Shown here: piece by piece, positions 1 through 43,065 of the stretch
Layout: each line of letters begins with the position of its first letter
How positions within the stretch are numbered: the first letter of the stretch is position 1
DNA from: Macrostomum lignano
Taxonomy: Eukaryota
Assembly: GCA_002269645.1 (NCBI GenBank)
Contig: NIVC01000019.1
Span: 124,001-188,000 of the forward strand
Direction: 5' to 3'
DNA: 64,000 bases
The notes under the pieces: generated by a model
What the model was told of the DNA's origin: nothing
What the model saw: only the letters and a program-made list of their open reading frames with translations
Databases searched by the model: none
Translations under genes and position numbers: made by a program

Positions 1-989
1 ATTGCTTCTTTCCCCTTGTTCGCGTCCTTTTCTTGTGCGGCTGCTGTTGAGAATGGGGGGGGTAGGATTAGAATAGTTTGAATTGGGAAGATTGCATTGG
101 GGATTGAGATTACCAAGTTAGATCTTACTGGGGGCGGGGGTAAAATTTACTTAGGGAATTGTATCTACTCGCAGCTACTGAGGGGGTAGAGAGAGCTGGG
201 GTAGATGGCAGCTACTGAGGGGTAGAGTGAGCGTGAGCTGGGGTAGATGGCAGCTACTGAGGGGTAGAGTGAGCGTGAGCTGGGGTAGATGGCAGCTACT
301 GAGGGGTAGAGTGAGCGTGAGCTGGGGCAGATGGCAGCGGCACTCACGGCAGCCGCAGTCGCCCGCTTGCCCCCGCCGTCTGGCTGCAGCACGGCCCCAA
401 AGTCCAACAGGGTGCCCGTCAGCTGGTAGGGCGCCTTGGCCTTGGCCAGACTGTCCGACTCCGCCCCGGATGACTGCCAGTCCTCCTCCTGACTGTCGGC
501 ATCATCGGCATCCGCCTCCGCGGCAGCAGCCGACAAAGCCGCGAACGGGTTGTCGGTTTTGCGCCGCGCCGCCCACTCGTCGTGCCAGTCGATCCGCAGG
601 CCATCCAGCAGCCGCCCCGTCCGCCTAGTCGCCAGCTCGGCGTCGAACTGCCCGACCTGCATCAGCTCCGCCTCCCGCCTCAGGCAAGAGTCCAGCCTCT
701 CCTCGACATCGCGAAGCCGCTCCTCGGTCCAGTCGGCTGCCGGCGGTGGCGTCGCTCGCGCCGAGTCGGCGAGCCGCTCGATCTCCGACACAACGCCGAC
801 GAGCTGCTGCTGCTGGTCGGCTGCAACCGAGTGGCGCCGGATGTCGGCGAGGAGCTCCGCCCGACGCGCCTCCAGCTGTTGGACGGCGTCGTCAAAAAAG
901 CCGTTGACCTGGTCGATGAGCTCCTTGCGAGAGTCGACTCGGTTGAGCAACAGGCGCAGATCGGAGGCCTTCGAGCCGATCCGCTCCAT
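1..989 (-). CDS. Array gene 1 (partial, runs off the window): coiled-coil module plus DNPF motif; probable exons 989-348 and 43-<1
   Basis: The ORF at 165..989 has the family motifs FFDDAVQQLEARRAELL and DEWAARRKTDNPFA. A phase-0 donor GCC|GTGAGT at 347 and an acceptor ccccattctcaacag at 44 make 44-347 an intron containing the 42-bp repeat. The next exon reads QPHKKRTRTRGKKQ. An acceptor tttttgcag lies just before the ATG. Confidence 0.7.
171..337. repeat. 42-bp minisatellite (~4 copies), probably intronic
   Basis: Unit gctggggtagatggcagctactgaggggtagagtgagcgtga repeated directly; it generates the YPSSRSLYPSVAAI tail of the raw ORF. Confidence 0.85.
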
Positions 990-1743
990 CGCAGCTGCTG
1001 CTGCAAAAATCAGCGGAGCTGCTCCGACTCAGACAGACTTAGACTTAGTTGTTATGTTCTCAGGATAGCCGCTAACTTGTGTGGCAATAACTATCAGCTT
1101 ATGAATCAAGACTAGCCGACCAGATAAGGCGGCCCTACTAATGCTAAAGCCACGACAAAAGTAAAATTATTGCAATACAAAAATTAAATTAAAAAGATTG
1201 AGGCAATATTAGTAGAAGTACTTTCTTTAAGGCGCGAAGCTAACAACCATGTTTAATAAAACTGCTACTATATACAAATATCGCCTACTTGATAGTAGTA
1301 GTAACAAAGGAATTTGAATGATTTATTTATTTAAAACCAAAGAATGCTGCAAACAGACGGCAATAAGAAGTATAAAAGTGCCTTTTGTGTACAAAAAAAT
1401 GGATTTAAATTTATTCCGGAATAAAATTATTTTTTCGATGCAAACAAAGAGCGTAAAAAAGTAAGAATGTAGAGAAATATCTAATAAACATACAACGCAA
1501 CCCCTCACAGTCACGCCCGCCGATTATATTCAACAATAATTGAAAAGCCACACAACCTTTCGCTCAGTCGTCGCACTGCAGCTGCTCAAATGTGTTAATG
1601 CACGACTCAATGTGTAGTTCAACTGATTTCTCCCTCATCTAAATAACCTTCGGGACCTTCAACGCGATGACTTTAGTTTAGAAAGAAACGCTGTCAAGAA
1701 TCGAAAAGTCATCTCTCTGTAAACTGCGCACATTCACAATGTC

Positions 1744-3021
1744 TTAGCATAATTGAATAGGAGCGGAATCGATCCCCCGACGTCGGGACCTCGGTGACCT
1801 GCCGCGGAGTAACCTGCGTGCCGCCCTACCACGCGACCGGCTCCTCTCTACGCCGCGAAACCTTCCACCTCTGCCAAAGACAAGCGATGCACTTGGCACC
1901 GCACCGTCCTCTTGAAGCTCGGCCTCGTCACCTTGAGACGACTGGCTCGAGTCTTCATTGCGTTGAGTTTCAACTAAAGAGCCGCCTCTTCCATAGGGCC
2001 TCGATCTGCCACGAAAACTGCCGCCGTAGACGCTTGGCAGGTAGCTTCGTCTGGCAGGATAAGCGGCGCCACGGCGCAACCGAGCTATGGATGAACTGTG
2101 CTCAGCATCCAATTCTGACTCACCCGGAGCAGCGACATCCCCGATCTCTCTCCGTTTAAGGTATCTTTCCTCAGGTACCTGCGCCTCATCACACTGAGAC
2201 GACTGGCTCGAGTTTTCATCAAGCTGCTGATTTTCGACTGAAGCACCGCCTCTTCTATAGGGTCTGAGTCTGCCACGACTGCCAAGTCTGCCGCGTTGCG
2301 CAATTGCCCGTCTTGAAAAATGAGCGACGCCACGGCGTGATGCGAAGACTGTTCGAGCAGCGAATGAGTTTTGTTCAGCATCCGCTTCAGCATCATCCCT
2401 TTCATCCGCGTCAGCCTCGTCTGGAGCGTTCACGTCATCGCTCCCCGTGCGACCAAGGTAGGCGCCAAAATTAACAATATTTAGAACTCTGTATTCACTG
2501 TAGTCTTCCAGCTGTTCGTATTGACTGTCGGCATCATCGGCATCCGCCTCCGCGGCAGCAGCCGACAAAGCCGCGAACGGGTTGTCGGCCTGGCGCCGCG
2601 CCGCCCACTCGTCGTGCCAGTCGATCCGCAGGCCATCTAGCAGCCGCCCCGTCCGCCTAGTCGCCAGCTCGACGTCGAACTGCCCGACCTGCAGCAGCTC
2701 CGCCTCCCGCAGCAGGCAGGAGTCCAGCCTCTTCTCGACATCGCGAAGCCTCTCCTCGGTCCAGTTGGCTGCTGACGGCGGCGTTGCTTGCACCGAGTCG
2801 GCGAGTCTCTCGATCTCCGACACGATACCGACGAGCTGCTGCTGCTGGTCGGCTGCCACCGAGTGGCGCCGGATGTCGGCGAGGAGCTCCGCCCGACGCG
2901 TCCCCAGCTGTTGGACGGCGTCGTCAAAAAAGCCGTTGACCTGGTCGATGAGCTCCTTGCGAGAGTCGACTCGGTTGAGCAGCAGGCGCAGATCGGAGGC
3001 CTTCGAGCCGATCCGCTCCAT
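1744..3021 (-). CDS. Array gene 2: coiled-coil + DNPF + acidic linker + RGG/RS-rich tail, no propeller (425 aa)
   Basis: Single ORF. The first ~170 codons are nearly identical to gene 1. The C-terminus has RGRSRPYGRGG and RSRSRGR...RGRSPRSRR. An acceptor tttcag lies 16 nt before the ATG. No propeller exon is found between 990 and 1743. Confidence 0.75.
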   Translation of the reverse strand: MERIGSKASDLRLLLNRVDSRKELIDQVNGFFDDAVQQLGTRRAELLADIRRHSVAADQQQQLVGIVSEIERLADSVQATPPSAANWTEERLRDVEKRLDSCLLREAELLQVGQFDVELATRRTGRLLDGLRIDWHDEWAARRQADNPFAALSAAAAEADADDADSQYEQLEDYSEYRVLNIVNFGAYLGRTGSDDVNAPDEADADERDDAEADAEQNSFAARTVFASRRGVAHFSRRAIAQRGRLGSRGRLRPYRRGGASVENQQLDENSSQSSQCDEAQVPEERYLKRREIGDVAAPGESELDAEHSSSIARLRRGAAYPARRSYLPSVYGGSFRGRSRPYGRGGSLVETQRNEDSSQSSQGDEAELQEDGAVPSASLVFGRGGRFRGVERSRSRGRAARRLLRGRSPRSRRRGIDSAPIQLC

Positions 3022-3776: not shown

Positions 3777-3799
3777 GAAGTAGCGAAAACTATGCGTGC

Positions 3800-4652: not shown

Positions 4653-4805
4653 CCCGCAGCCAGCAATGGTCATTCCGCTGAATCGCTGAGAACGCAAACT
4701 TCCTCAATCGTCAGGCATGTACACACTCGGTGCCTTGGCAGCTGGCCCTCAGGGGCCATTTTTGCACATACTCTCATGGAAAAATCAGACTCCGGACGAG
4801 TTCAT

Positions 4806-7506
4806 TCACATAAAAGAACTCATAGCGGCCGAGAACACGCAGCCGTTGTTGCAGCAGGCGGCAATGGAGTCCTTGACGGGGCACAGATTCCAAACAAGCC
4901 AGGGCGCCCTGACTGGCACACTGCTGATCAAGCTGAAGCTGTTCCGATCCAGCACGAGAAACTCGGTCACCCCGTCAGTCCGACGCGACAACAGCAGACG
5001 ATTTTGCACGAATTCGACGCTGGGAATCACTAACGACTGGAACGCTTCGCCCTGACATTCTGCCCGCTCGAACTCAACCGACTTAGCGGACTGTCGGCTG
5101 GTCGATTTGACAAGTTTAAGCGCGCATAGTCGATAGGCACTGGGCCCAGTGTGGTCCACTATGACCAGCCTGCTCTCAGTGGCGTCCCAGGCGAGCCTGA
5201 CCGGAGCAAAGAGTCCATAGGCCGCCAGTGAGATGAATTGACGAATTTTAACCGGCTTTGATGCGTCATCAACAAGCGACACGATGTAGATTCCAGCAGC
5301 TGGAGAACTGATTATCAATAATTCGCCAGTACTGATGGCGTCCTCTGGCGCTTCCAGCTGCCTGCTGAAATCAAGAAGCAGGCGCGATCGATCAGGTTTT
5401 GTGAAAAATTCGCTAAACTAAATAAAATTCCCTTAAAAACAACATGAGCGTCAGGCTGTTGATAACTAAAACTCCGACTGGAATGCTCTAAATTTTGGCA
5501 ACTTAAAAAGGCTCTGAAGTGACGGGTTATTTTTTGGTCTCCTCCCTTTGCGGCACAAACGCTACCTTTTTTGCTCGTCACAAATACATCTTCGCACCTC
5601 ACTCAAACTAAACCTATGAACGCAACCTGGTCTCCGCTTACTGGATGCGACTTGGATTGAGACTTGAGAGTTGAATTCGTACAAAAACATCGGGACTTCT
5701 TTGCTAAAACTTTTTCCCCAACATACTTGGCATCGTATACGATCTTTTCCTGGGATGACTTTCCTGGGTTTCACACCGAGATGGAAATAAAAAATGACAG
5801 TTTTGTACACTATGTAAGATGTAAGATTGTGTTTTAAGAGGCAGAGGAAAAACCTGCCTCTTAAAATTTTCCAAGAAACGTAATTCCCGCCTTCCTACTT
5901 GAGTAGTCTTTGTGCACTCCACCATGGTTAGGGTTAGGCCTTCGCACCTTTTTCTGGATGTCTGCTGTCACGTCCTTTATTATTTAGCTATGTCTTCAGC
6001 TTAACTCAATTTTAATTTAGCTGTTTACGATCTGGAATTCTATTGGTCCGCGGGATCGCCTGGATTTAATAAAAATCGTGCTCAGTAAAAGTTGCACCCG
6101 ATAGTTCATTGATAAACTTTGGGTGATGAAACAACAAGCACTCACTTTCGACTGAATTCCGGCCCGATTCGGAACTCAAGGCGGCCGGTCGGATCGGTGA
6201 CTAATACCTGACGATTCGACCTGTCAATCACAATTAGAAGATTATGCCTGCTACACGATCGAATTCGATACGGATGAATCACGGGCGGACTGTCCGCTTG
6301 ATGCCTGTAGCTGAAGAAGAACACATTGAGAAATTTGCCAGCTGCGCTGTACACAAATATCCTCTTCTGCGGCAGCTCAACAGAGAAATACATGTTTGAC
6401 AAATAAGTCAGTGATACGGGAAAGTTGTGCAGACTGAAAGACATAATGATCTCAAATGGCAGCGCATCCTGCACCGCCGACAATGCATCTGCATTGCCGC
6501 AGTCAGCTCTGTCGGCATCAGGAGCTGCTGTAGGCAAGGTGTGACCGCCTCTATTAAAGCCACCTCTGCCTCCTCTGTTGGCTGAGGCGACATTGGACGA
6601 GCCGCGTTGAGACGGCCAAGAAAAGTTTCCACCACGAGACCGAGACATGCCACGACCAGCTCGAGAACGAGGGCCGCTTCTACCTCGAGATGAAGCCACT
6701 TGACCCCTAACTGCAACAGGTGAAAAGAAGTACGCAACGTTATCTGCATCGCCTTCACAGTCATCCTGAGAAGGTGTGTTCGAATTTTCATCGGATGTTT
6801 CGCCTTCGACAGTCTGATTGAACTTGTGCAGTTCAGCAGCTGATCCGTGCTTAGCAGCGCCCCGACCATACGGCCTGGCTCGTGCACCCACACTGACTCC
6901 ACGAATTCCATGCGCTCGATAAGGCCTTCTGTGCAGCCAGGTGCCTCCACGAGCACCGAAAGATCGTTGTTCATTACCGCCAGCTCCATCTGCTAGAGCT
7001 GTTGCACCACTGCATTCTTCTTCTCTACTGCTGCGCAACACTGTGCCAAAATCAACTTTCTGCAGCACCTGATAGTCACAGCTGGCGAAGTCTTCAGCCT
7101 GGCAGTCTTCGCCGCTGTCGGCTTCTTCGGCGTCCGCAGACGAGGCGAACGGATTGTCGGCCTCGCGCCGCATCATCCACTCGTCGCGCCAGTCGATCTT
7201 CAGACTGTCCAGCAGACGATGCGTTCGTCGACTAGCCAGCATTGCGTCAAAATGGCCGCTTCTGAGACGGATTTCCAGTCTCTGTTCAGCATCAGAATTT
7301 GCAACAGCTTTATAAGCATCCTCTCTGCCATCCTGCTGCTCCTCGTGCTCTTCAATATCTTCAATGAGCTCGAATCTGCGAGCCTCCAGTTGCGCTATGA
7401 CGTCATCAAAGAAACTATTGACCTGACTTTTAAGCTCCACGGTTCCGGCTGCTTGGCTCATCGAATGTGGCTCATCGAATGTGATCGGCAAAGTCGAGGA
7501 AAACAT
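4806..7506 (-). CDS. Array gene 3: coiled-coil + DNPF + RGG-rich linker + NHL-like propeller (~639 aa); exons 7506-6146 and 5364-4806
   Basis: Phase-2 donor AA|GTGAGT at 6145 and acceptor gatttcag at 5365 join GPEFSR-N-RQLEAPEDAISTG in frame (1361+559 nt). Propeller-like motifs include HPYRIRSC..LLIVIDRSNRQVLV and PVRLAWD...LVIVD. Confidence 0.85.
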
Positions 7507-9551: not shown

Positions 9552-11669
9552 CTACATCAGGTAGCGTCTATCAACAACATAGACTTTTCCATTGTCGCAG
9601 CCGATAGCAGCTTGGCCACTTTCCAACGGGCAGAGGCAGATCGCTGGCCAAGGCGTCTTCACTGACTGGAAGCTGGCGCGCCACAAGTTGACGCCAAGGA
9701 AGCTGAAAACGCGAAGGGTCCGGTCGCTGGTCCAGCAGCACAGCAGCAGGCGGTCGCCAAAGAACTCCAGGCAAGGCGGCGTCTCCGATTCGAACGTCCC
9801 GCCGTCTGGCGCGCCCCAGTCGCTCGCCTCAACTGTAGTTTTAGCCGGCTTCAGATGGAACGCGCGCAGACGGTAGGTGCGGAGAGTCACGTGGTCGAGG
9901 ACGCACAGCCTGGCCGCAGTCGGATTCCAGGCCAGTCGCATCGGCGCCGACAATCGCAGTTTGTCACGAGCCAGCGTCGCTTTGCAAGTTTTAGGTGCGG
10001 TCAGGGAGACCAGGTAGATACCCTGGCTTGGCGAGCAAATTGCCAGAAACTTGCCAGTGCTCACGGCGTCCTCGGGTGCAGACAGGCGGTGACTGCAGAA
10101 TGTTATTTAAGAAAGATACGTGTACATACGTGTAAGTCACTATTGGCTAAGAAAAGTTATGTAACATCTGGCCCATCCCGCCACTTCAGTTTCTGTGGCT
10201 ATGATTCATACAATGCACACTTACAGTAAGCGTCTGGAAGAAATATGAGACTTACACGCAGCTAAAATACGGACCAACAGTGAGAATCGGTGACAAGTTT
10301 TGCCTGGCCAACAGGTGCACCTGACAGTTGGACTTGTCAATTAGGATAAGCGCATCCCATTCTCTAAACGAGCGAATACGATAGGCATTCTTCACGCGAG
10401 GGCCAATGTTGCGAGCTGTGCTAAACTTTCCACTTGAATCGTACACGGAAACACTTTTTGGATACGACTCAATTGAGTAGAATTCGTCAGGTAAATAGGC
10501 TAGTGACTTCGCTTTCTCACGGAGACTGATTGACAGTTGGCAAGGAAACGGCGATGAATCGCTACTTGAGGAATTTTGTTGCTTACTAGATGAGGAACTT
10601 AGAGACTGGTCTGCTGATGTAAAGTGATGTGACGCCTTTAGCTTATCCGTTTGAGGCGGTAGCCTCTTCTTCTCAACAATGCATGGAGATTCACTTAGGA
10701 TTGAAACGGAATAGCCTTTGCCGGTATCTGATACAGACGCACTTTGTCCAGAAGCTGACACAGGTGTACCTTTTCCAGTCGCAGAAGGCATAGATGCACC
10801 TTTACCTGTCGCTGACGGCATAGATGCACCTCTTCCAGTAGCTGACACAGACGAGTAGCGGCTATTTTGAGCTGATGCGGAACCAATTTTAGTAGAAGCA
10901 GACACATTACCACCTTCATCAGAGGTTGTTTCAGATGCGCCTTTGTTGGCATCCAATGTTATTTCTGTATTGAATACGGAACTCTGTAATGGTTTATAAT
11001 AGTAGTTATAATCACATGCATGCAATTGACTTTATATGATTGTATATTTTTCAAGTGAACTGATAGACACCATCAACTCACTTGTACACCAGCTTGCTTA
11101 TTTTGAACTTCTGACAAAGCAGAGCGCAAGTTCTCCGTGCTTAGCAGTGAATACGCAGAGAGAATTTCGCTTTCTTCATCACTCTCAACCTTCGCAGCGT
11201 CCACAGATGAGGCGAACGGGTTGTCTGCCTGGCGCCTCATCGTCCACTCGTCGTGCCAACTGATCTTTAGACTTTCCAGCAGACGCTCCGTTCGCCGCTT
11301 GGCCAGTTTTGTATCGAACTGCCCGATCTGCAGCAGGTCAGCTTCGCACCGCAGGCAAGCGTCAAGCCTCTGCTCGACATCGCAGTGAGTCGCTGAGTGA
11401 TCAGACTTATGATCACCGGAGCCCGTCAACTTCTCTGCATCCTCGGCAATAATGAGACTATTAATTCGCTGTTCAGGTGTCAGAGAGTGATCTTGAATCT
11501 CTCTGAGCAGGCCGGCTCTGCAAATCTCCAACTTGGCGATTGTATCGTTGAAAAACTCGTTCACCTGCCTGAGCAGCTCTTTGTTGTCAGATGCGCGGTT
11601 AATCAGCGACCGGAGCTGCGTAGACTTGAACTGCATTGCCCCCGTGTCTATTATTGATGAGCGAGACAT
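9552..11669 (-). CDS. Array gene 4: coiled-coil + DNPF + Ser/Thr/Gly linker + NHL-like propeller (618 aa); exons 11669-11082, 10983-10256 and 10092-9552
   Basis: Introns 10984-11081 (phase 0, CAA|GTGAGT...ttacag) and 10093-10255 (phase 2, GT|GTAAGT...ttctgcag). Exon lengths 588+728+541 close the frame. The junction reads GPYFSC-V-HRLSAPEDAVSTG. Confidence 0.88.
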
Positions 11670-13159
11670 TCGGCAAGCTGAAATAGGACGTTTGAAAATA
11701 CGCGTAAATTACAACTGCTACGGTGCAAGACTGACTGGCTTCAAGGTAAAACAGGTGCAACTGTAAGCTCGTTTTAACCACAATTAGAGCTTAGAAACGT
11801 TAGATAGATAGCCTATTTGATGCCCAAGCTATACTGTCATTTGTCTGAAGCTTCACGTCTGGCTCTATCTGAAATATTTTTGACAGCCTTTTTAAAAGAA
11901 AATTACCTAGTACTGTGGAGGTTCTACCACCGGAACCTCCCTTATGTAACTAAAATTCAATGCATAATAGCAAAAAATAAAGCAAAGAAGCATAGCAACT
12001 CCAAAAAAGCCAATGGCAAAAGTATATATTTAAATGCCCACTTTGACGCCACACAATCAGTAAAACGCAGCTGCTTGAACGAACAAACTTGCTAGACATG
12101 GAAGCTTCTCTAAAAAAGAAATGCTAGCTTTGAACGACAAAAACGGTGACCACAAAAAGAATAAATTTATATAAAAACTCTTATGAGAGGTTAATAACTA
12201 TACTTGACGAAACCTAATAGGACCCCAGACACAGAAATTATTTAGTGCCTTTAGACAGTTTTGCATTGCCACCAGCACAAGCTCTACTTGCTCAAGCTAA
12301 TTACGGCTCGAGGCGCAGCAGGCTGACGCGGCAGCCGCGCTTATCGCAGACTGCCAGGCGACTGCCGCCATCCCCGACCGGATCGTCGACCCAGCAAACG
12401 TCGGTCAGACGCTCCCAGTTACCGAACTCACACGTGTAGTTCAGCCTGCGCAGCGGATTTCGGTCCAGTCGACGAAAAGATTCATCGCGAAACTGCATCA
12501 ACTCGTAGCCATCGACGATGACGGCCAATGGCGAAAAGCCGCTGCCGCCAGACGGCAGGTAGGCGATCTCGGGCGTCCTGTCCGAGGCCAGGCACGCGTA
12601 GAATTCACTGTTCAGTATGAGACCACCTGACGGTTTGTGACAGTTGGCGAATTCAAAAGCGCGCGCAACGTAGCGACCGTCTTCATCGTCCACAACCACC
12701 AGATGGCCGGCCGACTCGCACCAGGCCATGCGGACCGGCTGCTCGAGGTCCAGATATTCACAGGTCTGCGTCACCACGCGAACGGCGCTGTAAGCGGAGT
12801 CGACAACAAGGATAAAAATGCCAACCAATGGGCAACAGATAAAGAGACAGCTGCCGTTGCTCACAGCCTGCTCAGGATTCTCAAGAAAGTACCTGAAAAT
12901 GAGAACATTTGATTGATCTTGTTTACGAGTAGAAACTTGCTTATATTATAGTTTGTCCGCTAACTAGAGCAAACTCTAATAATACCGACTATGGCTAGAA
13001 CACATGATAATAATCAACCACAGAAGGCTTGCACTACTACGGAGGCAGTGTAACTTTAGGTTCAGTTGGTTTGCAGGCGGCTTTTAGCACTGTGGCAAAT
13101 CAAAGCGAGTCAATCTACAGCCCATGACAAGATAAACATCCACGCCCATTTTGTTTAAC

Positions 13160-13392
13160 CACCCTGAGCACGCAGGTATGTGCTCACATAGGGAGCATAG
13201 CGACCCAGACTTTTTATCGTCAGGCATGTACAAACTCTGTGCCTTAGGGGTTTGGCCCAGATGTAAGACAATCGCACAATCCCCAAATCAATATTTTAGT
13301 GCACGGGGCCCAAATTAATGTGGTCGCGCACGCCATCAAACCTGGTGACTTTGGTGCGAGAGTCGGGCGCGTTACCGCTGAGCTGCTCTACT
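13160..13392 (-). mobile_element. tRNA-derived SINE (family A) in the intron of gene 5
   Basis: The reverse strand has a tRNA-like head (AGCTCAGCGG box A, degenerate box B) followed by cattaatttggg and gtacatgcc.gacgataaa, shared with the copy at 37880-38146. Confidence 0.6.
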
Positions 13393-13933
13393 ATTCCCCC
13401 AAGTGGAATCAGATCAGGAGTTCAGAAAACTTCAACATGTAAATCAAAGCAGATCCACAACAGCGTATTAGACATCACTGGCCAGCCTCACAACTGATCA
13501 AATGATGAAACTAGACCGGGAAACGTTTAAAAATGTTCAGAATTCTAACGCTCACCTAGCACTAACTTTAGGACCGATTTCCAACTCGCAGCGGTGCTTC
13601 GAATCGACACAAAGCACCATATCGTTACGTTTGTCAACAGTGATGAGCCAGTCGTTAGTTTTACACGAGCTAAGCCGATAGGCTTTCGTATGCTGCATTT
13701 CCACGCCATCAAAATCTGTGACTCGAAGCTGGCCGCGATACTTTCCGCTAACTGCATCGTACCTGTGAACAGAGTTCTTCTCCACAGTGTAGAATTTACC
13801 ATGAATACTGGCGATAGAATAAGGCGAATTCATAGTGCGAAACTGCTGCACATACAATTTGGCATCGTGATCGACTCTGTTAGGTGAACCTAAGGCTGTT
13901 GAGTAGCTAGAACCACTTGAATTAGGACTAAAC

Positions 13934-31358: not shown

Positions 31359-34300
31359 TCATCCATAAAGTGGACGCCGAAAGGCTAAAACGGAGCCTTT
31401 CGCATCGCAAATAATAGCTTCACCAAAGCTGCTCGTCTCCGGTGGAAGCCAGCAAATATCTCTTGGGCTAATGTCTTCAATAGTAGCGCTGCAGTGCTCA
31501 GCAGCTAGATGCATGGCATTAGTGGGAAGCCAACTAATAGTACATGTTGAATCTGAAACCCAAACAAGTACCATTTCGTCAGCTTTAAGCAGGACATTCG
31601 GCGCCACCGATGACTGAATCGTCAATCTGGGAGCCGGGAGTGCCGTCAATTGACAGCAGTCAATCTTAAAGGCTAAAATTCTATACTCCTCAGTCTTTAT
31701 AGAGGTTCGATCAACTACGAGCAGCGTTTCTGACTTGTTACACCAGGCCATTCGCACAGGACAGGACATCTTTAAATCGGTGGAGCATAGCTTAATTTCG
31801 GTAAGGTTATCAAAAATAGCCGTGTAAATGCGACCACCAGGACAGGCAATAATCAGCTGACGGCTTGTACAAATTGCGTCCTCAAAGCCTCCTTTAGGAA
31901 CTTTAAGAGAGTGCAAGAGACGACCCGCAGGATTAACACAAGCAATTTGCTTGTTGGTGGGATGAGAAACTATAATCGACTGTCCAGTGCAGCTAAGTCT
32001 AATGCGGTGAGCAGTGATATCAACGGCTTCACCACTAAGCGTGCACAGACGAATACTTTCTAACTTTTTACCTGTCAAGTTATAAACACTGAAGCAACCC
32101 CGGCCAGATCCTTCTGAAACGTAAATTCGATCGGAAAGAACAGCTGCAGACTTCGGCTTCGAAACTTTAAATAGTTGTAAAACATTCTGCGCGTGTGAAG
32201 CAACCTGTTCAGTTGGACCTTTTCCAGCAAATCTTTCGCTATTTATGCGAGAATTGCTGTGTAAAGTTGAGTCGCTGTGATTTTTACAGGCGGTTAGAGC
32301 TTTCACAGTGTGAGATGCGTTGTCAGTCTTCGGCATGGGACATCCTTTGATCAGCGTTTCCGAAACAACTTCTGTAAAAAAATCATTGGCAAGGCGAACT
32401 ACGTCGACTGAAACATCTAAGGTGTGCAGTTCTGCATCACCTGTAAGTAGCGAAGACGCACCCATGCCAACAGCATGTTCATCCTCTCTGCTCATTACTC
32501 CTTCTGCTTCCGTCCTATCAGTTGGAGCTCTATCCGCAGCGATGCCCTCGGTTGGCTCACATTCATATTGAGTAAGATTCGCTGCAGAATCAGATTTCGC
32601 AGATTGATGCTGCAGGCTGCTGCAAAAAATCAGGGTTTGAAGAAAGAATTGCATTTTAGTATACAACTTACGATCTTAACGATCTCGAACTTTAATTTTC
32701 ACTTAAAAATGAAAGATATAAAAAGAAAAAAATAAGAGCTTACCTGTAAGAAATAACTATAACGTAGCCTGAGTTCTTACAAACAGCAAACGTGCCCTTT
32801 TCTGTAGGCACCCAATTCATGTCGATAGGAAACGACTCTATTCCAGTTTTACAGCTTTCCAGTTCGAGCAAATCGTATTGAGCGGACATCGAGTCTGAGT
32901 TAGATGCTAACCAACTAAAAACTGCCGTAGTACCATTAAGTCTTCCAATTACAAGTTCACTGTCATTCATGATAGCGCTGGGAATCACCGATGAGTCAAT
33001 AGCCAAACTTGGAAAATCCAATAATTTTAAACCCTGATCACATAGCTGAAATGCTCGAATTCGATAACTGTCAGAGTTAGTTTCGTTAACGTCGACAACA
33101 AGCAAGGTTACAGAATTGCTGCACCATGCTAGTCTCACTGGAAGCAATGGCTCTGGAACGCCAAGAATATCGAGCTGGGATAGTTGCTCAACATTATCTA
33201 AAGAGGAAATGAATATGCCACTTGATGGAAAGCATGCAATTATATGCTGGCCTGTGCTAATCGCATCTTGTAAGCCAGAATGCGTATTTATAATAGCATC
33301 GACTATTCCATTAGGTCTGGCGCACACAATTCTATCATTGCTCTGGTCGATAAGGATAATCCATTGCTTAGCTTGACATGAGCGAAGGATACTTGGAACG
33401 CAGGCTACTTGGCGGTCATCGTGTCTTTTAAGGACAAATGCCCCGCGTGCGAAACCAGAACTCGTATACACATTAATTGGACGAGACGATGTCGATCCCA
33501 AAACATAAAACTGCTTCTTCAAGTACGTCACGGAGATGGGATTCATAAAAGTACGAAACTTCCGCACAGATATAGATCGAGAGTTAGTAAAGTCCGAATG
33601 GTTGGAAGAGAATCCATCATCGTGAGTATCAAACAGTTTAGAAGATTTAACAATGTTTCGATCTTCATAACTGCTTTGTTGGTTATAGAAAAATTGCGAC
33701 GCTCCAGCTTCAGTGTCAGTGAACAAGCTTCCAGAAATCTCCGAGCAAGTAATGGCGGAGAAAGGTTCTGACCATTCAAGCCCCTGATCCCTGGAACATA
33801 CAGACGCGGATTGCTCACAAGTAATGGATACATCTGTGTCTGATTTCACAGAAGCTTGATATTCCAAAGATTCTGCATCAACCAGCTCAGTTTCTTTCTC
33901 TGTGCTGCTGTCAGCCATCCTGCTACTGATTGTCGGCTTCTCATCGACACTTTTGAGAGCAGATTCGTCACGTGGAGCTTCCATGCAAGCGATTTCTATG
34001 GTAGCAGCTAAAGTAGGCTGGTCGATTCTTTTCGACAAAGTATAGTCGCTTTGGTCCGATGACGCAGCGGCGAGACGGTCACCTATTTCGCTATTCTCGT
34101 CACGGTTTACAGAAGAATTCGAGTCTTTTTGGTTGTCTCTGGCACGACCCTGAATAGAAGCTGCACATTCAGGGCCTTCTGAGTTTTGACGGGAGGCCGA
34201 CTCTTTGTCAATAATCTCACTAACCTTTACTTCTTCCCAATGAACTGCCAGGGCTAGCAAAAGCTTTTCAATTTTTTCTTCAATATCGATTGTGTTCCAG

Positions 34301-34653
34301 AATCCGCGCATGACACTGCCAGACTCTGTGACAACTTTATTGATAGCGGAAGTTAAATTTGCCTCAGCATGGCACAGCTGGCTGACAGTGGTGCAGGTGG
34401 ACTGTTTAGCCTCGGAGGCTTCGGAAACTGCTCTCTGCAATCGCTGGCGTCTCTGCGCCCAGTCCGCCAGCTCTCGGTGGATAAGCGCACGTCTACGCGC
34501 AAGGGCAAGCGACAGCTGGTCAAAAAGTTCGCTAGGCGACGCGAGCTCTGGCCCCATCGATTCCAGCAGTAACTTCCCCATGTCCAACTTGCGTTGAATG
34601 TCCAGCTGTAGCGCTTGCAGCGCGTCGCTGTTTGGATTGTTAGAGTCGAACAT
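31359..34653 (-). CDS. Array gene 11: coiled-coil + linker + propeller + linker + propeller (~1056 aa); exons 34653 (or 34710)-32744 and 32619-31359
   Basis: The apparent stop of the ORF at 32740..34710 overlaps a perfect donor AG|GTAAGC (32743). Acceptor attttttgcag at 32620 resumes the 31359..32666 ORF in the matching phase 2, giving a 124-nt intron. Confidence 0.75.
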
Positions 34654-35808
34654 GAAGAATATCAACAAGCTACTCGTTTTATTGAATAGTGAGAATAAAT
34701 CACGCATCATATCAATATCATAGAGCTCTTACACCATTTGGCAAAATAGTCTTTATGACAGTGGCTACCAAACTGAATGCTAAGGTCCTGCCCTTAGATA
34801 TTGGTGGCGTCAAATACGATAATCTGGGGCTTAAAAATCAACTATAAAGCTGTAGTAGCGTAAGTCCGATCGTACGTCGGAACTTTTACACTGCGGAGAT
34901 AGAAGCTAAGAACGATCTTATCTTACGATGGCTTTATAGAACGCGCCCAAGTCTTTTTCTATACAATGAACCCAATTTCTAACCAGTTTTCAATGCAATC
35001 CTAGAAATACGTTTTCTAATATGATAACTACGCCCGTACCGACTTACTTTGGTCTCTTCGAAAAAAAACTAAAGCTCTAGATAATGTTTTAAATGCTTTT
35101 AATAAATTAAAAAGCTGAAAGACAGGCTAAGAATTACCAAAAAGCGCAAGGCAAGCACAACGGAAACAACACAGTTGAAAACACTGGCAGTGTTTCATTT
35201 TACTTTTGCTATTTAATAGGCAGCTAATCAACACGGAGAGCGAGGCTTAGAGAATGCAACTTTAATCACCAACTGAGAAAAGCATTGTTAAATAAAGATA
35301 AAAAATAATTGAACAGTGATTTAAAAATACGAAGCACATCTACGAAAACAAATAGGTTTGAAAGGAACGGGTGTCTTTATTTAAATATATAGAAATAGTA
35401 TCGGCCGCACAAAACGAACAAACAAAGTACATACATATATATATACTTTTTTATTTAGCCCATACATTTGAAACGCAGACTTTTTGATTAAATCTTTCTA
35501 TCAATTTATTAGACTGAAGTTACGAGCCAGCCAATATAAATTAAGTTAATGAAATTTGAAATAAACAATTAACAAACATTGAACGAAAACAGTCGAGACT
35601 TTTAGCCGATGATTTCGATGATCGCTACCAAAAATGGAAGACAGAATACTTAAAGTAATTATTATACGGCTTTAAGGCTATAGATAGATAAATGCTAATC
35701 AAAGCACTAGTGACCAACAGCTCAAGGGAAAACCTCAGAATCTGATCTGGAGCAGTCAGCAAAGTCATTCAACGGGCACACATAACCATATGGTAAATCC
35801 TCGTGTAC

Positions 35809-38800
35809 TCAACTTAGCTCAGCAATTTGCTCAACCACAACCACACTACCATTTACAGCGTCGCCAAATACAGCACCTTGACCGTTGCGAAAAGTACACA
35901 GAGCAGTTGGACGAGTCACCGAACCAATGGCAGAGTCGACGTCCTTAGCAACGGTAACAACGCCCAACCCGGAGTTGGCGAGATTAATTAGCAACAATCT
36001 GCAGACTTCTCTTATTCCATTGTCACCAAGGCAGACAGCGGCCGGCAGGATTAGTCGATCCCGGCTGTACACCATCAGCCCAGTCAGCACCAAAGCCGAC
36101 GACGTAGCAAATGGAAGCGAATTGAAGTTCAGGCGTCGGATAGGCGAGAAGGACAGCGGCGCCAGCGGAGTCCGCGCCAGGCCGCAAAGCACTACCGCCG
36201 ACGGTTGCGATCCGGCCAAGGCCGCTGACGCAACAGCCAGGAGACTGTGGCTTTGGCACCAAGCCAAGCTGGCAGGCCGGCTGACGCTCAGAGATTCGCC
36301 GGACTGACGTTGCCACACGGCCGGGGCGAGGCCGGGCTGGCTGGCGGCCAGCAGCAGGCAGTTGGTGTCCGGACAGGCCACGCAGACAAGTCCGGCGTCG
36401 GATGCGGCAACATCCGTAGCACCGGTGGCAACTTCGGAGCCTTAAACAGTTATTGAAGCGTCGAAGGAGTCATTGAAAAGTCATCGGCACTTGGCAAACC
36501 AGGGCTATAGTGGTGCATTGGCACTTTTAGTGTTTTTTACACTAAGCAGATGTACAGTGGTGCAAATTGTTGGAAATTCCAACTCACTCATTTAAAACAA
36601 AGTGCTCTACCTTCAAGCGTCCACAGAAGACAACCCGACGGCAGCTGAAAGGCGCGCACAGAGGTGCTGGATTCGCCAGTTCGCGCCAAAACGAACAGCG
36701 CGCCGCGTCCACCGATGACAGCCGATCGAACCGCGCCGATTCCAGTCAGCGCAGTTAAGCCTGGCGGCAGGGGCTGCTGCTGGCCGCGAATGTCGTAGCA
36801 GCCAAGTCGACCGATTTTTTTTAAATCAGAGTCTTCCTGTTCAACCACGTACAGCCGGTCATTGTGGCAGGCAATAGAGAGCGGCGTGCCGGCGTTGGCG
36901 GTGCGAAAACGCCAGGAGTTTGCGCTACTGGAGGCAGAGGTCGAGGCTGAGACGGCGGAATTGTCGGCGCTTGAGGCAAGCGAATTGGAGCGCTGAGGAT
37001 TGGCGAAAATACGAAGACTAGTCATTGCGCGAACAAACAGATATAGAAATTTGGCACGATTCAACGAGTTTTAAAATTAATTATATGGTAATACATCTCC
37101 TTTTGAGATTCATTTGATTTATACTCGATTAAAATCCCAGACACTAAACTGGTGCATAGCCATGCTTGGGCACCCGCGCAACCTCGGGATTCACCCGGCC
37201 GTTTCTATTGGCAATACACACATGTAAGTCGCTATTGGACGGAATAGTAGTCACGTGACTGCTCTCAGCCAATAGCGACTTACATGTGTGTGTGTTGCCA
37301 ATAGAAACGGCCGAGTGATTTCCAAGGTTGCGCATGTGTGCAGCATAGCCGGCAGCAGTCTGACGTAGCAGCGTGGGAGATTTTAAACAGACAAACCATA
37401 GACAACAGAAATCAATTTGGGCATCAATAACTGAGCCACAGGTGGAATGCATGACTAAAGTAAAGAATGTCACAGAGAGGACCAAACGCCGAAATCAGTC
37501 TGGTGGACAGAAAGAGAATCGTGAATGCATGCGTGACTGGTGGTTTGGAGTTTGGTGTTCGTGAAAGAAAGCAAATCGATAGAGACGACGAATAGAATAA
37601 AAACGACAAGATTTTTCACACTAAAAGGCGCCAAAAGTACGAGTAGTATTAAAAGTCGCCTAGGAGTCTCCTTGTAGCGTCTTATTGTCTGCGACTTTGA
37701 AACGACTCGTATTCGAAGCGTGCTATAGTCGTGTTTGAAGCGCATTTGCGTCGCATGATGAATTAGAGTGACATTTATTATTTTTTTATTAGAGGCAGGG
37801 GGGTTGTGTGCACCCTGGCGCACTTTAAGCGACATAGGCACACAACCGGCGAGAGGCATTGCTGCCCATTCCGCCGACTCCCCTGAGCAGGCATACAAGC
37901 GCGCGGATACGTACGCAGGCACACACTCACACAGGAGTGTACAGCGGCCCTAACTTTATTTTATCGTTGGGCATGTACACTTCACTGCGCCTTGGGGGGT
38001 TGGTTGGCTCTCGAGACCGTTAATTGCACGAGCAGAGCCAAGCCGAAATTCCAATTCAGCCCCAAATTAATGTGACTGCACTTGGAATCGAGCCTGGGTC
38101 GCTGGCACACCAGAGCAGCTGCGCTACCGCTGGGCTACGGCCCCCCTAGAAAAATGTATGCCGCCAACACACACGATTCTTGGATTCTATCAAGACTTAC
38201 GCGTTTGAGTCGTTAAAGTAAGTCACAAAAGTCACTCCAGAGTCGTTTTCTAAAACCTAGTCTAATCAATTTTTCCAAAAAACGAATAAAGTTTCGGACT
38301 GAGACTCGACCTTGGATAGTTGTGATGCAGAAAACTTTAGAGCTTCTCAATCAATTTTCATCGGGAATGGTCTTATTTAAAATAAAATAAGCAGTTTGTT
38401 TTTCAAGTTTCTTAATTTAAAATGTAAATGTTCAGAGCACCGGCCCATATACTTGTAATTCGCTCGGAAGTAAAGCCCATGGAGGTGTCGACACGCATGG
38501 ACTAAATTAATGCTAGAATACTCATTAAGTTACCCATATTGCATTTTCGGCTGGCATGATTTTGCTTATAGTTCAGTGACCTCTCTGGGGAATATACGCG
38601 TATAATATCTATGGCGACGCATTCACTTACGTTAGCTAAAACAGCACGGTAAGCAGGTTCACTGGCAACCAGTTGCTTTGCCTTATCATTGGCCGTCTTT
38701 GCCTCTATTCTGGCGCTGATATTGGCTTCAACTGTGTCGCCAGTGCCGCCAGCAGCTGAGAAGGACTCCGTCAACGGTATGAACAGGCTGGAAAGGCGAA

Positions 38801-41800
38801 GTGCAGCACCTGAGATAACAGTGCTGACTGACCTGATTGAACTTGCAGCTGGCAAGAGAAGCGGTTCAATGCCGTCAGCGGAACGGAAGCCGCAATTTGG
38901 GCAGGCAAGGTCGCGAGTTCGAGCATCCTGTAGCGCGACGAGACAAGGTGCGCAGAACACGTGGCCGCAAGGCACCCGTCTCGGATCAATAAATGACGCG
39001 TTGCAGACGTTGCAGGTTTGAGTGATGTCCCTATTCTGCTGCGCCTTGTCTGGGAGAGCATTTTCTTGACTGGACAGGCTGCAGTCTTTTAGATTGGCTG
39101 TGTAACCAGTGTTCTTTGTCTCTTCATTAACATTGGATTGAGCACTAGCCATTTCTGAAGCTTTCACTGACAAAGAAGGTACTTCGCAGGGGGCAGAAGC
39201 CATCGACGCAGTGATATTAGAGGCACTAAACGTCTCAATGCTTGGCCCAGCAGAAGATTTTTGCTTACGCGCAGTGGACACAGCAACTGTTGCTACGTCA
39301 GCTGTAGCCGACTGATTCGCTAAGTTGGCCGGTTCTCTAAAGGAAAATGAAAAGAAAGGAAGTTGAAATCTAGTCGCGGAACAAGTCTATAGAATTAATT
39401 TAAGAATAAATAACCGAAATTATACTTTTAGCCGAGTCAGACATTCGATTTATCCATCTGATTCTAGATATGCTTACGAAGGTACCTAAAAAGTTTTTGG
39501 ACTTGACCCTTTTTGAGCAAAGTCAGTGCACCAAACTTTCACACCTTTTCAGAGTACCCCCCCACTCTGAATGCAGCGCTCCATACAAAGAAACCAGGCT
39601 TGAAAGCACTGGGACCACTGGAGGCTCTGTAGGCTTCCTCTTCGTCATGGAATTAAAGTTCCAAGAAGTTTTTCCTTGGCTAGTGCAAACAAAAAGTAGT
39701 CCCACGGTGCCAAGTCAGGAGAATAAGGCGGATGGGGAAGCAGCTGAATGGATTTCTGAGCCATGAAATCCACATTGCGAGCTGCTGTGTGTGCACAATG
39801 GCATTTTCGTGGTGCCACAACAGACCGCACGTTCCGCTGCGAGGTCTCTTCTCGCGCCACTTCTGCAGAACCTCTGGAACGCATACTGTTGTGTACCATT
39901 CTGCATTGACTGTTCTTTGCTTATTAAGTGGCACAATCGCCAAATCGCCTGTTATGGAGAAGAAAGTGGCGACCATCTTTGAGTTAAAAAGCTAAAAATT
40001 TAGGAAATGACCGAGGAAAGGATGTTCGAGTCCAAAAAATGTTTAGGTACCCTCGTATAATAGCCAACGCTTCAAATTAGGTTGCCTATTTGCTATAGGA
40101 AAGGCACACAACATATCGAAAGGTGAACATTGGGTCTGCCTCCTATAGCAATAACAATTTTAATATGAAAAAGGGAAAAGTTTCTATCTCCGCAGTGTAT
40201 TGTTCAGCGAACACCAGCCTCTTTAACATTTTCTAAGAAACGTGGTTTACCGCCCTACTACTTTGAGTAGTCCTTGGCCAACACACAAAGAGCACTACTC
40301 ACGCTGGCCTATCAATAAACAGTACGGAGCCGAGCTTGTCCCAGACTGCCACAGTCTGGCAGTTGTCATCGTCGCTCGTGCTTGTTACATCGGCTGGCAG
40401 GCACTGCGCCAGCTGCACCTGGCGCACCGAGTAATCATCTAGCGAGGTGGCGCCCGGCGGCACCCAGCTGACAACTAACCGGCCGAGCCAGTAGCGCGCC
40501 ACAACCAGCTCGCCATCTGCGCGCACCAGCAGCGCCGGCAGAGTGGCCGATTGAAGAGATACACAATGCCGCTGGGCTGGCCGAAATTCCGCTGTTGAAG
40601 TGGCCGAGTTTGCATTGATTTTATAAGCGCGGATCGAATACTCGGAGCTGCTGTCGGCTAATTGGTCTATGACCAGCAGCAGCCTGTACTGCCGGCACCA
40701 GAACAGGCGCTTGGGCTGCACGGGTGCGTTGGACTTAAATGTGCACCTGTTGGTGATGTTAAATCAGCATTAGGAATGTAAATAGGGAATGTCAACCAAA
40801 GCACCGGGATGTAGCCAATCTATAACTTGTTCGACTAGCCGATTAGAGAGGCCGTGACATCTCACCCATACCCCTCCTTTGAAGAAGCTTTGGACTTTTA
40901 TAGGATAGGAAATTTATCGGAGTCTACAAATTGACTGCCTCAAATTCTAACCAATTTGAAAAAAAGAATATAAAAAAGAAATTAAAGTAACTCTTCATGC
41001 GATTTTTTACACATCAATACAATGTCGTGTGCTGTCAAGAAAGCTTTCACCAACCCTGTTGTATACCTAAGGTCAACTTTGTTAGAAAAACTGAAACTTT
41101 CTAAGCGGTATGCCAACATGTGTAAGCCAAGGACTACTCAACTAGAAGGACGGGGAAACTAATTTTCTTAGAAAACGTTAAGGAGGCCTAAGGTTTTGCC
41201 GAAAAATACACTACAGAGATAGGACCTTTTCCTTTTTTCATATTAAAATTGCTATTGCTTTCGATAGGAGGCAGAGCCAATGTTCAGCTTTTGATATGTT
41301 TTGCCCTTCTTATAGCTCTATTGATATTTTTATTCTACGTACAATTGCATATGTCCTGTGCCTAAAAACCATTAAAATGGCACGGCTCGGCTCACTGGTT
41401 TTATGAATATATTTTAATATCTCAGCTGACTGTGTAAGAATATGTGTGACAGAGATGATAAAATAGATTCATAAAACTAGAGTCGAGCAGTGCCATGCAT
41501 TTTTATGACTTCTAGGTACAGGGAATGTACGTAGAATAAAAATCTAACATTTGAATCCTAATTTTCTGAACAAAAATCTTTATTAATATCAATAGAGCTA
41601 TAAGAAAGACAAAACATATCAAACTGCCTCCTATCGAAAGCAATAACAATTTCAAAATGAAAAAGTGAAAAGTTCCTATCTCTGTAGTGTATGTTTTTCG
41701 AAAAACCCAGCCTTTTCGGCCCTTGTAGCTGAGTAGTCCTTGGTGTAAGTTAGCATATTCATGATTGTTTATTCCTACGTACAACATCGTCCAAAAACCG

Positions 41801-43065
41801 CTAGTTTTATAATCATGGTGGCTATGCCACCAAGAAGTGCATCTCGAATCCACCGATGGACTTATTTAGGTCTGGGATTAAGATATTGTTGTATTTTAAT
41901 CGAAGTAAAAATGATGACATGTATTCATTTTGCTAACACACCTGTTCAAACCGCTTCCTTTATCAACAGGGGCAGTGTAAAATTGGTTGCGCTCAGAGCA
42001 GACAATCAGGTGTTGCCCAGTGCTAACAACGTCCACCAAGTCAGCCAAAATGCCAGCCACAGCGGTAACTTGGCCGCTGGTCTTGGCCCAGGCCACCCGC
42101 TTGTGCCCGGCATCGAGCAGGATCAGGCGATTCGACACGCGGCAGGCGGCAACCCGAACCGGCCAGGTCACTTTTTTGTCGGAAAATTTCACTTCTCCAA
42201 TGCTACGAGTCGCCGAACAATTTTCGTCGCTGCCAAGCGAATAGGCACCAAGGCGAACTTGTTCGATACCGCGAGAACCGGACACTTCTAGGCAGTAGTA
42301 GGTGTCCCCGAGGCGTGTTGCAGAAATCAGAGGCGAAAGAAGACGGACTGACTTGGACTGAGTTATTGCTCCAAAAAGAGCTGCATTTGATCTGCCCGAC
42401 TCAGCAACAGAACCTGCATTTGATCTGCCCGACTCAGCAACAGAACCTGCATTTGATCTGCCCGACTCAGCAACAGAACCTGCATTTGATCTGCCCGACT
42501 CAGCAACAGAACCTGCATTTGATCTGCCCGACTCAGCAACAGAACCTGTATTTAACCTGCCAGACGCCGACTCACTTAAACATCCAGAATTCGCAACAGA
42601 AGAAGGCAAAGTCGAACTGTTTGAATTCGAGGCAGAATCAGAAAAGCTCAGTACAGCATCTGCTGCAGTTTTCGCCGACTGTCTCGGTGACTGCACCGGA
42701 TTTTGGTCAACTTTGCTACCAAAATTTACCAACGAATAGCCGCCCCCAGCAACCGGAACAAAGGCGGTGGTCCTGTAACTGTCTGGCACAGGCGTCCATC
42801 GCAGTTCTAAACAGCGCATGAGCCTGGCAACTACGGACTTTAACTCGGCATCAGATTCTCTGCTTAATTTGTTCTCTACCGAGCAGTGCCGAGTAAGCTG
42901 TGCGAGTTGCCCTGAGAGACGGGCGAAAAAAGCATCAATGTTTGTCTGGCAACAGCCGACCGACTCTGTGGCGTCAAGGAGTCGACGAACAACGTCAGCC
43001 TTCTGACGGAGTCGCTGCCGGGCAAGCCGCACCGGGATCAGCTGACTATCAGCTGACTCTTGCAT
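35809..43065 (-). CDS. Array gene 12: helical N-terminus + propeller + C3HC4 RING + propeller (~1095 aa); exons 43065-41942, 40746-40303, 39336-38631, 36992-36611 and 36440-35809
   Basis: Four GT-AG introns with matching phases (2,2,0,1); exon lengths 1124+444+706+382+632 = 3288 nt, open throughout. Apparent ORF stops at 40299 and others coincide with donors (GC|GTGAGT, AAC|GTAAGT). Confidence 0.7.
37880..38146 (-). mobile_element. tRNA-derived SINE (family A)
   Basis: The reverse strand reads GGGGCCGTAGCCCAGCGGTAGCGC...GGCTCGATTCC (Pol III boxes A and B) followed by a non-tRNA body shared with 13160-13392 and partly with 43200-43330. Confidence 0.7.
38892..39014 (-). other. C3HC4 RING finger (TRIM-type) within gene 12
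   Basis: CNVC-x11-CGH-x2-C-x2-C-x13-CPNC, with the P..vPCGHvFC..CL signature. Confidence 0.9.
39477..40055 (-). mobile_element. Internally deleted mariner element (579 bp) in intron 2 of gene 12
   Basis: TA|cgaaggtacctaaaaagtttttggact ... agtccaaaaaatgtttaggtaccctcg|TA (27-bp TIRs, TA TSD). Frameshifted transposase C-terminus: VMATFF..G...TVNAEWY, LWHHENA, LLPHPPYSPDLAPWDYFLF. Confidence 0.92.
40092..41745. repeat. Three copies of a ~190-bp repeat: 40092-40285 (+), 41122-41325 (-), 41590-41745 (+)
   Basis: Shared blocks acatatc..aaag.tgaacattgg.tctgcctcctat, aattttaatatgaaaaa and gagtagtccttgg; roughly 80% identical by eye. Confidence 0.8.
42381..42560 (-). repeat. 33-bp coding tandem repeat (SNAGSVAESGR, ~5 copies) in the gene 12 linker
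   Basis: Unit ctgcatttgatctgcccgactcagcaacagaac repeated perfectly and in frame. Confidence 0.9.

Follow-up and report, generated by a model that had tools for sequence, protein, structure and literature searches.

A stretch of 64,000 nucleotides (nt) from the flatworm Macrostomum lignano, hereafter the window (positions 124,001 to 188,000 of contig NIVC01000019.1, assembly GCA_002269645.1), contains a tandem array of 12 paralogous genes that combine an N-terminal helical module with a C-terminal propeller. The window matches the contig at 100% identity over 21,872 bp, and record coordinates are obtained by adding 124000 to those given here. The genes, lettered A to L in order of rising coordinate, lie head to tail at window positions 165–43065, every one on the minus strand. 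An earlier note, made from the sequence alone, had reported 12 such same-strand paralogs; the array is confirmed as a real observation, and its members are homologous by profile. The propeller is a divergent member of the NHL-repeat superfamily and is nearest to the NHL domains of animal TRIM-NHL proteins. On balance, we favour reading the locus as 12 transcribed paralogs of a Macrostomum-specific NHL family whose products are probably RING-less recognition or adaptor proteins.

Spacing from the stop codon of one array gene to the start of the next is 631–2045 bp, and the introns in the window DNA are of the eukaryotic GT-AG type. The array is flanked by a protein kinase gene, past gene A and outside the window, and, past gene L at about 44–52 kb, by a gene for the splicing factor PRP4. 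Thus there are exactly 12 array members at the locus. All-against-all BLASTP of stop-to-stop open reading frames (ORFs) resolved two conserved modules with non-matching linkers between them. Matches between linkers are confined to close paralogs; these excepted, the linkers are unrelated to each other, as had been proposed.

The propeller and the helical module

A profile hidden Markov model (HMM) of 281 positions, built from nine copies of the propeller, detects 11 clear propellers, and copies outside the training set score 1e-13 to 1e-49 (L1, G1; the numeral gives the order of propellers within a gene). L2 is a very divergent twelfth propeller, with an HMM value of 1e-4 and an hhalign E of 3.6e-6 against the family profile, colinear over 264 columns. 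In the window, the HMM finds no match above position 43134 and none on the plus strand. Pairwise identity between propellers is 21–32%.

Structures were modelled for the gene J propeller (residues 213–486) and the gene J helical module (residues 1–145). The AlphaFold2 model of the propeller, made with a paralog alignment, has a predicted local distance difference test score (pLDDT) of 91.1 and a predicted template modelling score (pTM) of 0.90, and its 24 strands form six four-stranded blades. In a Foldseek comparison with the PDB, the NHL domain of TRIM2 (7qrv) comes first (E 3.8e-9, template modelling [TM] score 0.67); PAL has a TM score of 0.65 and generic WD40 propellers about 0.6. The C-terminal domain of gene J is thus modelled as the six-bladed propeller that had been expected.

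A search of 1.84 billion representative proteins with the family profile gave 214 matches at E<=1e-3. The first 13 (E<=1e-30) are M. lignano hypothetical proteins, which comprise homeologs of the array genes and a second cluster of paralogs, and seven of seven sampled among the next-ranking matches are NHL-repeat proteins, with E down to 7e-26. One lower match is a true RING-B-box-NHL protein. When the profile was compared with PDB sequences, the top matches were all NHL domains, in the order Drosophila Thin (8.4e-8), TRIM2/TRIM3 (4e-4), TRIM71, NHLRC2, Mei-P26, Brat and PAL. The signature LiiiDksNkrVlcv of the array propellers aligns to the vvaDsnNhRvqvf of NHL repeats. The AlphaFold2 model, the Foldseek ranking and the profile matches together show that the label "NHL-like propeller" in the earlier note is correct, with TRIM-NHL proteins as the nearest solved relatives.

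Most propellers are split at one shared site by a phase-2 intron (...GPxxSxK | GTAAGT ... YAG | ..L..PEDAVSTG), which is missing at this position from J, K1 and K2. Nine propellers were compared in composition: five are basic, with isoelectric points (pI) of 8.5–9.4, and four acidic (pI 5.4–6.0), with 7–18 cysteines in each.

The helical module is about 100–190 residues long and starts at or near the initiator methionine. It falls into two subfamilies, one in A, B, C, D, F and G (truncated in E) and the other in H, I, J and K. The subfamilies cross-match colinearly (HMM 3e-6 to 6e-3; hhalign 93% probability, E 3e-7, 120 columns), and identity between helical clades is 20–25%. The module of gene L aligns by shared motifs only (FF..L, E.kL and Rl..L.l.W), with an HMM E of about 0.9. 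A helical module shared across the array, as first described, is thus borne out, in gene L by motif only.

The model of the gene J helical module displays four helices (residues 10–30, 38–79, 87–109 and 115–129) at a pLDDT of 71 and a pTM of 0.36. Foldseek with this low-confidence model returned only noise and no fold match. An antiparallel coiled coil had been anticipated; helices are indeed predicted, but the antiparallel coiled coil itself is not demonstrated by this monomer model. In a comparison of the helical profile with the PDB, the best matches are four TRIM25 coiled-coil constructs (E 0.013–0.18), in an alignment that crosses the FFD..LE.RR.EL motif. An hhalign comparison of the profile with one genuine RING-B-box-coiled-coil-NHL protein was not significant (probability 0.14%), and its best local match lies directly after the B-box. 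An origin of the module from a TRIM coiled coil is suggested by these profile alignments but not established. A word-indexed protein search with the helical-module profile recovered the gene J homeolog only, and therefore no outside relative at that sensitivity.

Two short motifs are conserved within otherwise unalignable linkers. The first, W..RR.AD[ND]PFA, directly follows the helical module in A, B, C, D, F and G. The second, [DN]F[GS]x[VYK][LV], is found in A, B, C, F and G, 20–40 residues after the PFA motif, and also in L, and corresponds to the Y....vdFg.vL motif that had been noticed in several members. More speculatively, the two could be docking motifs, NPF/DPF-type and possibly LIR-like. 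The linkers of B and C are rich in RGG.

Gene structures, the RING finger and probable fusion junctions

The proteins show the architectures helical-only (I), helical-RGG/RS (B), helical-NHL (C, D, E, F, H and J), helical-NHL-NHL (G and K) and helical-NHL-RING-NHL (L). The order helical module, linker, NHL is present in A, C, D, E, F, G, H, J, K and L. The list of architectures drawn up beforehand stands for the helical-only, RGG, single- and double-propeller forms and for the RING between propellers. However gene A, which had appeared to be helical-only, has a propeller past the window edge.

Exon 1 of gene A (348..989, minus strand, as for all genes of the array) encodes the helical module, the W..RR..DNPFA motif and a DFGAVL motif, with a GTGAGT donor after position 348. 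The propeller exons lie beyond the window start, and the full-length database models P0169 and P0013 (594–596 amino acids, aa) contain the propeller. Just downstream of exon 1 is a 42-nt x 3.5 repeat (193–338). The helical-module exons of A and B are a tandem duplication (490–1001 and 2522–3033, 94.7% identity over 512 bp), which is also present in the homeolog. Gene B (1744..3021) has a helical module and a 258-aa RGG/RS-rich tail, without a propeller; its homeolog is an intact ORF with a tail 98% identical. In the GenBank protein P0169, the helical exon of B is joined to the downstream sequence of A exactly at the duplication boundary, without GT-AG. A genuine splice from B to A was considered and rejected, as the annotated junction fits no canonical GT-AG pair, and the junction is probably a mapping artefact. 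Between B and C is a 78-nt x 11 satellite (3800–4652).

Genes C, D, E, F and H each encode a helical module, a linker and one propeller. Gene C (4806..7506; exons 7506–6146 and 5364–4806) has an RGG linker and agrees with P0159 (635 aa). Gene D (9552..11669) has the exons 11669–11082, 10983–10256 and 10092–9552, and its homeolog model P0009 (622 aa) has identical junctions. In gene E (12301..14508; exons ~14508–13556 and 12892–12301) the helical module is shortened, the linker is repeat-rich, with 57/114-nt repeats at 13939–14184, and the 5′ end is uncertain; the database models are P0006 (402 aa) on this contig and one of 603 aa on a homeolog. Gene F (15220..17076) consists of exons 17076–15872 and 15760–15220, and P0004 (586 aa) is encoded at its position on the source contig. 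Gene H spans 23659..25348 (exons 25348–24351 and 24226–23659). The same order of modules is contained in gene J as a single exon of 486 aa (28467..29927).

Gene I (26024..26449) is a helical module alone, of 141 aa, and its homeolog is annotated as a separate gene of 138 aa. The GenBank model that covers exon I on this contig (26024–27091 and upstream) runs upstream past 27091, and its 299-aa product has a match to PRP4 (PF08799). A duplicated PRP4 exon near gene I was considered and rejected. Since no PRP4-like exon is found between I and J, the model probably joins the first PRP4 exon, at ~52 kb, to exon I, as a chimeric or read-through transcript model.

Genes G and K each have a helical module and two NHL propellers. 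Gene G (18318..21681) has the exons 21681–~20320, 20084–18954 and 18849–18318. Near 20376, an A-run with a 1-nt deletion interrupts the frame between helical module and propeller; both homeologs are free of this deletion, which is either a real frameshift or allele, or a homopolymer indel error of long reads. Homeolog models of G have 1009 and 892 aa, and the annotation on this contig covers 20371–18318 only (568 aa). Gene K (31359..34710) has two exons, 34710–32744 and 32619–31359, and the sequence at the K1–K2 junction in P0001 and P0151, the homeolog models (833 and 1054 aa), is ...VISY|SSLQHQ....

The 1095-aa product of gene L (35809..43065) contains a helical module, an NHL propeller, a RING finger and a divergent NHL propeller, encoded by exons 43065–41942, 40746–40303, 39336–38631, 36992–36611 and 36440–35809. 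This five-exon model equals the database protein P0030 in 598/599 residues, gap-free, across three junctions, and homeolog models of 1083 and 1055 aa both have RING matches. The linker contains an in-frame 33-nt x 5.6 repeat (42381–42565; SVAESGRSNAG). An extra phase-2 intron in L1 (40747–41941, minus strand) is placed where no paralog has an intron; it is also present in the homeolog, has AACAG|GTG at both ends and contains a ~600-nt imperfect palindrome (41127–41743, arms up to 73 nt at 90%). The sequence resembles a foldback or MITE-type element that was inserted and then became an intron.

The RING of gene L (38892..39014, minus strand; CNVCNASF...CPNC) has the complete C3HC4 zinc-ligand pattern CNVC...C.H..C..C...C..C, with Pfam matches to zf-RING_UBOX (1.9e-8) and to zf-C3HC4 (1.5e-7, above cut-off). 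Its nearest solved structures are TRIM39, TRIM69, RNF135, CBL, TRIM2 and TRIM25. By Pfam, the RING occurs only in gene L, internally at about residue 630 of 1095 and not at the N-terminus. A regular-expression scan for RING in the sampled paralog and homeolog models P0005, P0007, P0010, P0012, P0154, P0163, P0164 and P0030 found it only in the last of these, the gene L fragment. No match to zf-B_box was obtained with Pfam at E<=0.1 in 10 window proteins. With no B-box, and with 11 of the 12 genes devoid of a RING, the family therefore does not consist of TRIM proteins by definition. The earlier description as a B-box-less, TRIM-NHL-like system is accordingly right about the B-box and about the nearest relatives of the propeller, but the TRIM definition does not apply and the coiled-coil link is marginal.

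Important for the multi-propeller forms are two stop codons that lie inside splice donors. The TAA stop of K1 is inside the donor TAC AG|GTAAGC (32740–32746, minus strand), and the TGA stop of L1 is inside CCA GC|GTGAGT (40299–40305, minus strand). None of the other 11 gene-terminal stops of the array lies inside a consensus 5′ splice site. Splicing from the K1 and L1 donors adds the next unit in frame, in phase 2: a linker and a propeller in K, and a RING-bearing linker and a propeller in L. The database models use both junctions. Multi-propeller forms probably arose by fusion of neighbouring array units, with the stop-overlapping donors as a fusion scar. Judged from the junction sequences, the two sites could also act as a splice-or-stop switch that yields either short or long isoforms. 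The second cluster of the family, on other M. lignano contigs (P0005, P0007, P0010, P0154 and P0164), includes P0164 (1415 aa), in which a helical module of subfamily 2 is followed by four tandem propellers.

Homeologous arrays, selection and neighbouring elements

Colinear copies of the array are found on contigs NIVC01000089.1 and NIVC01001995.1, at 87–99% nucleotide identity, and gene content is the same in all three homeologous arrays where compared. The two extra copies are in keeping with the recent duplication known from M. lignano, and the presence of three colinear copies shows the array to be older than this genome duplication. The annotation of GCA_002269645.1 was built from RNA-seq and transcript assemblies (PMC5730564). 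On this contig its models cover A, C, E, F, G (in part), H and I; those of D, G (in full), I, J, K and L are on the homeologs. These public gene models carry the name "hypothetical protein" only.

Ratios of nonsynonymous to synonymous substitution (dN/dS) were calculated by the Nei-Gojobori method, pooled, between the window and the NIVC01000089.1 copy. The ratio is 0.36 for the helical modules (1318 codons), 0.35 for the propellers (2977 codons) and 0.70 for the linkers (1150 codons). Gene I has a ratio of 0.41 from 14 changes, and the helical modules of A and B, compared with each other, one of 0.32. These values indicate moderate purifying selection on the folded modules and nearly neutral evolution of the linkers. 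Whole-domain positive selection is not seen in the pooled ratios. The array had been called rapidly diversifying, a description that is not borne out by the dN/dS of about 0.35 in the folded modules against the homeologous array. The 21–32% identity of the propellers reflects age or past divergence rather than demonstrated ongoing diversification.

A lineage-specific family had also been proposed, and as far as the databases reach this is so: the closest matches are all from M. lignano, and no orthologs were found outside the species. Word-indexed protein searches with gene J and with the RING exon gave no matches, and missed even the homeologs. An exact look-up of the gene J protein returned no record. 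The literature search found no searchable paper with the locus tags and none linking Macrostomum and NHL.

Beside the array, the minus-strand gene for the U4/U6 snRNP PRP4-like WD40 protein extends over 44122–52357, with an N-terminal exon at 51974–52357 and WD40 exons at 44.1–46.4 kb. Its introns contain 20-, 25- and 28-nt satellites (44398–44865, 45404–45929, 46529–46842 and 50436–51932). A non-LTR retrotransposon (46881–50222, plus strand) lies antisense within the PRP4 gene and has an intact 1113-aa ORF with endonuclease, reverse transcriptase and an RNase H-like tail. Remnants of mariner-like transposases are found at 39648–39991 (minus strand), inside intron 2 of gene L, and at 58929–59450 (plus strand); the two are 45% identical over 44 aa.

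Proposed role and comparison with known systems

The family is an uncharacterised, lineage-specific variant of a known protein type, RING-less and B-box-less, and so far found in Macrostomum only. Its members are composed of an N-terminal helical module, a fast-evolving disordered linker and zero, one or two six-bladed NHL propellers. By analogy with Brat, TRIM71 and TRIM2/3, they may be cytoplasmic RING-less recognition or adaptor proteins, with helical modules that would self-associate and divergent propellers that would recognise differing ligands, either RNA or protein. The RGG/RS tracts of B and C may point to association with ribonucleoproteins. On inspection by eye, the N-termini read as hydrophilic helical modules and not as signal peptides, and for this reason secreted or extracellular NHL proteins, teneurin- or PAL-like, were judged unlikely.

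Several observations weigh against such a role. With Pfam, ten window proteins gave nothing at E<=0.1 except the RING of L, and the NHL model PF01436 is silent; one paralog elsewhere in the genome has a Pfam NHL score of 0.0078, which is under the cut-off. The helical module is tied only marginally to the TRIM coiled coil, and one profile-sequence test of this link failed. The range of propeller pI (5.4–9.4) makes a uniformly basic RNA-binding face, as in Brat or LIN-41, unlikely for all members. B and I are without a propeller, so ligand recognition cannot be the role of either. Gene B is only presumed to be transcribed. No expression, localisation or binding data were found for the family, and the locus tags are absent from the accessible supplementary tables of M. 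lignano expression studies.

Other roles should also be considered. The proteins could be specifically RNA-binding post-transcriptional regulators, as are Brat, LIN-41 and Mei-P26, diversified for mRNA motifs in germline or stem cells. RNA-binding TRIM-NHL domains are the nearest solved relatives of the propeller, B and C have RGG/RS-rich regions, and the five basic propellers out of nine (pI 8.5–9.4) would suit such a function. However the remaining four are acidic (pI 5.4–6.0), the NHL domains of TRIM2/3/32 and malin bind proteins, and the accessible parts of published tables show no germline or neoblast enrichment, and a general RNA-regulatory role is possible but doubtful. The earlier note had proposed a combinatorial E3 ligase, in which RING-less subunits heteromerise through their helical modules with the RING-bearing L, which then ubiquitinates targets captured by the propellers. 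TRIM coiled coils dimerise, the genes are all co-located and co-oriented, and L has a canonical C3HC4 RING closest to TRIM RINGs, plus the family helical motifs and an NFG motif. TRIM heteromers, however, are generally limited to close paralogs, and the helical clades here are only 20–25% identical. Within the array, the helical module of L also diverges most (HMM E about 0.9), and L has its RING at a distance from this module, flanked by two propellers, which is not the TRIM geometry. It is because of this divergence and this distance that a ligase of this kind is disfavoured, and we consider it improbable.

A family for innate immunity or for the restriction of selfish elements, engaged in an arms race like the primate TRIM5/22 or fish finTRIM clusters, would account for the tandem arrangement and for a further cluster at another place in the genome, for the large divergence between paralogs and for the lack of orthologs found outside the species, and the M. 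lignano genome is transposon-rich (PMC5730564). Yet the propeller dN/dS of about 0.35 shows no excess over the helical module, and the same gene content in the three homeologous arrays, where compared, argues against recent turnover; this possibility is highly improbable. That the array is decaying and largely non-functional, its gene models being read-through or assembly artefacts, could be argued from the frameshift in G, the lack of a propeller in B and I, the non-canonical junction of the A/B model and the chimeric-looking model that joins exon I with PRP4. But intact long ORFs are present in three homeologs, the folded modules have a dN/dS well under 1 and the linkers one about twice as high, and GT-AG introns are kept at the fixed phase-2 position. 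The frameshift in G lies in a homopolymer of a PacBio-based assembly, with both homeologs intact, and decay can hardly be the explanation. Thus a family of recognition or adaptor proteins remains our preferred reading. Its improbable extension would be a flatworm-specific modular recognition system, in which the splice-or-stop sites give either single-propeller adaptors or longer forms (two propellers in K, two and a RING in L), and I and B act as regulators or decoys of oligomers. This would amount to a combinatorial surveillance of RNA or protein, analogous to vertebrate TRIM immunity but independent of it.

M. lignano serves as a transgenic model in work on stem cells, regeneration and reproduction, and a large part of its gene set is lineage-specific and named only "hypothetical". 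For at least a dozen such genes, and for a second cluster, none of them assigned by Pfam, the present analysis provides a fold and a superfamily, NHL, with TRIM-NHL as the nearest group. They represent a RING-less and B-box-less NHL family that expands by tandem duplication and probably, by way of stop-overlapping donors, by fusion of neighbours.

The closest known system is the TRIM-NHL group (class VII: TRIM2, TRIM3, TRIM32/Thin, TRIM71/LIN-41 and Mei-P26, with Brat as a RING-less member). In both, a helical region precedes a six-bladed NHL propeller at the C-terminus, and TRIM-NHL proteins give the best structural and profile matches of the array propeller, as a TRIM coiled coil gives the top, marginal, PDB match of the helical module. 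A TRIM-like RING is present in one array member (L), and Brat shows that the RING is dispensable. Unlike TRIM-NHL proteins, the array has no B-box and no filamin domain, 11 of its 12 genes lack a RING, and the single RING is placed internally, with a propeller on each side. At about 42 residues, the longest predicted helix is much shorter than a TRIM coiled coil, and the linkers are long and disordered. Tandem multi-propeller forms, with two propellers here and four elsewhere in the genome, and the lack of a score with Pfam NHL are further differences.

NHLRC1/malin and the NHLRC proteins resemble the downstream half of gene L, where a short linker connects a RING with an NHL-like propeller and both B-box and coiled coil are lacking; the propeller-profile matches include NHLRC2. 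Unlike malin, the RING-NHL unit of gene L is spliced behind a complete helical-NHL unit, and the propeller that it contains diverges more than any other of the array. Bacterial multi-NHL repeat surface proteins, with many NHL blades, are also recovered by the propeller profile (E 1e-26 to 1e-4). However these carry PKD, Ig or SH3b domains, are secreted or located at the surface and have no helical module, and the likeness is at the repeat level only.

In its genomic arrangement, the array is similar to clustered TRIM expansions (TRIM5/22, fish finTRIMs), whereby tandem paralogs combine a conserved oligomerisation part with a variable C-terminal recognition domain. TRIM5/22 belong to the fast-evolving "group 2" SPRY-TRIM clusters (PMC2533329). 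Those expansions carry B30.2/SPRY domains, keep RING and B-box and show positive selection, whereas the M. lignano array has NHL domains with a dN/dS of about 0.35 and its three homeologous copies are colinear where compared. If the propellers prove to be diversified binders of RNA or protein, the array would represent a second, independent clustered expansion of a recognition domain, with NHL in place of SPRY.

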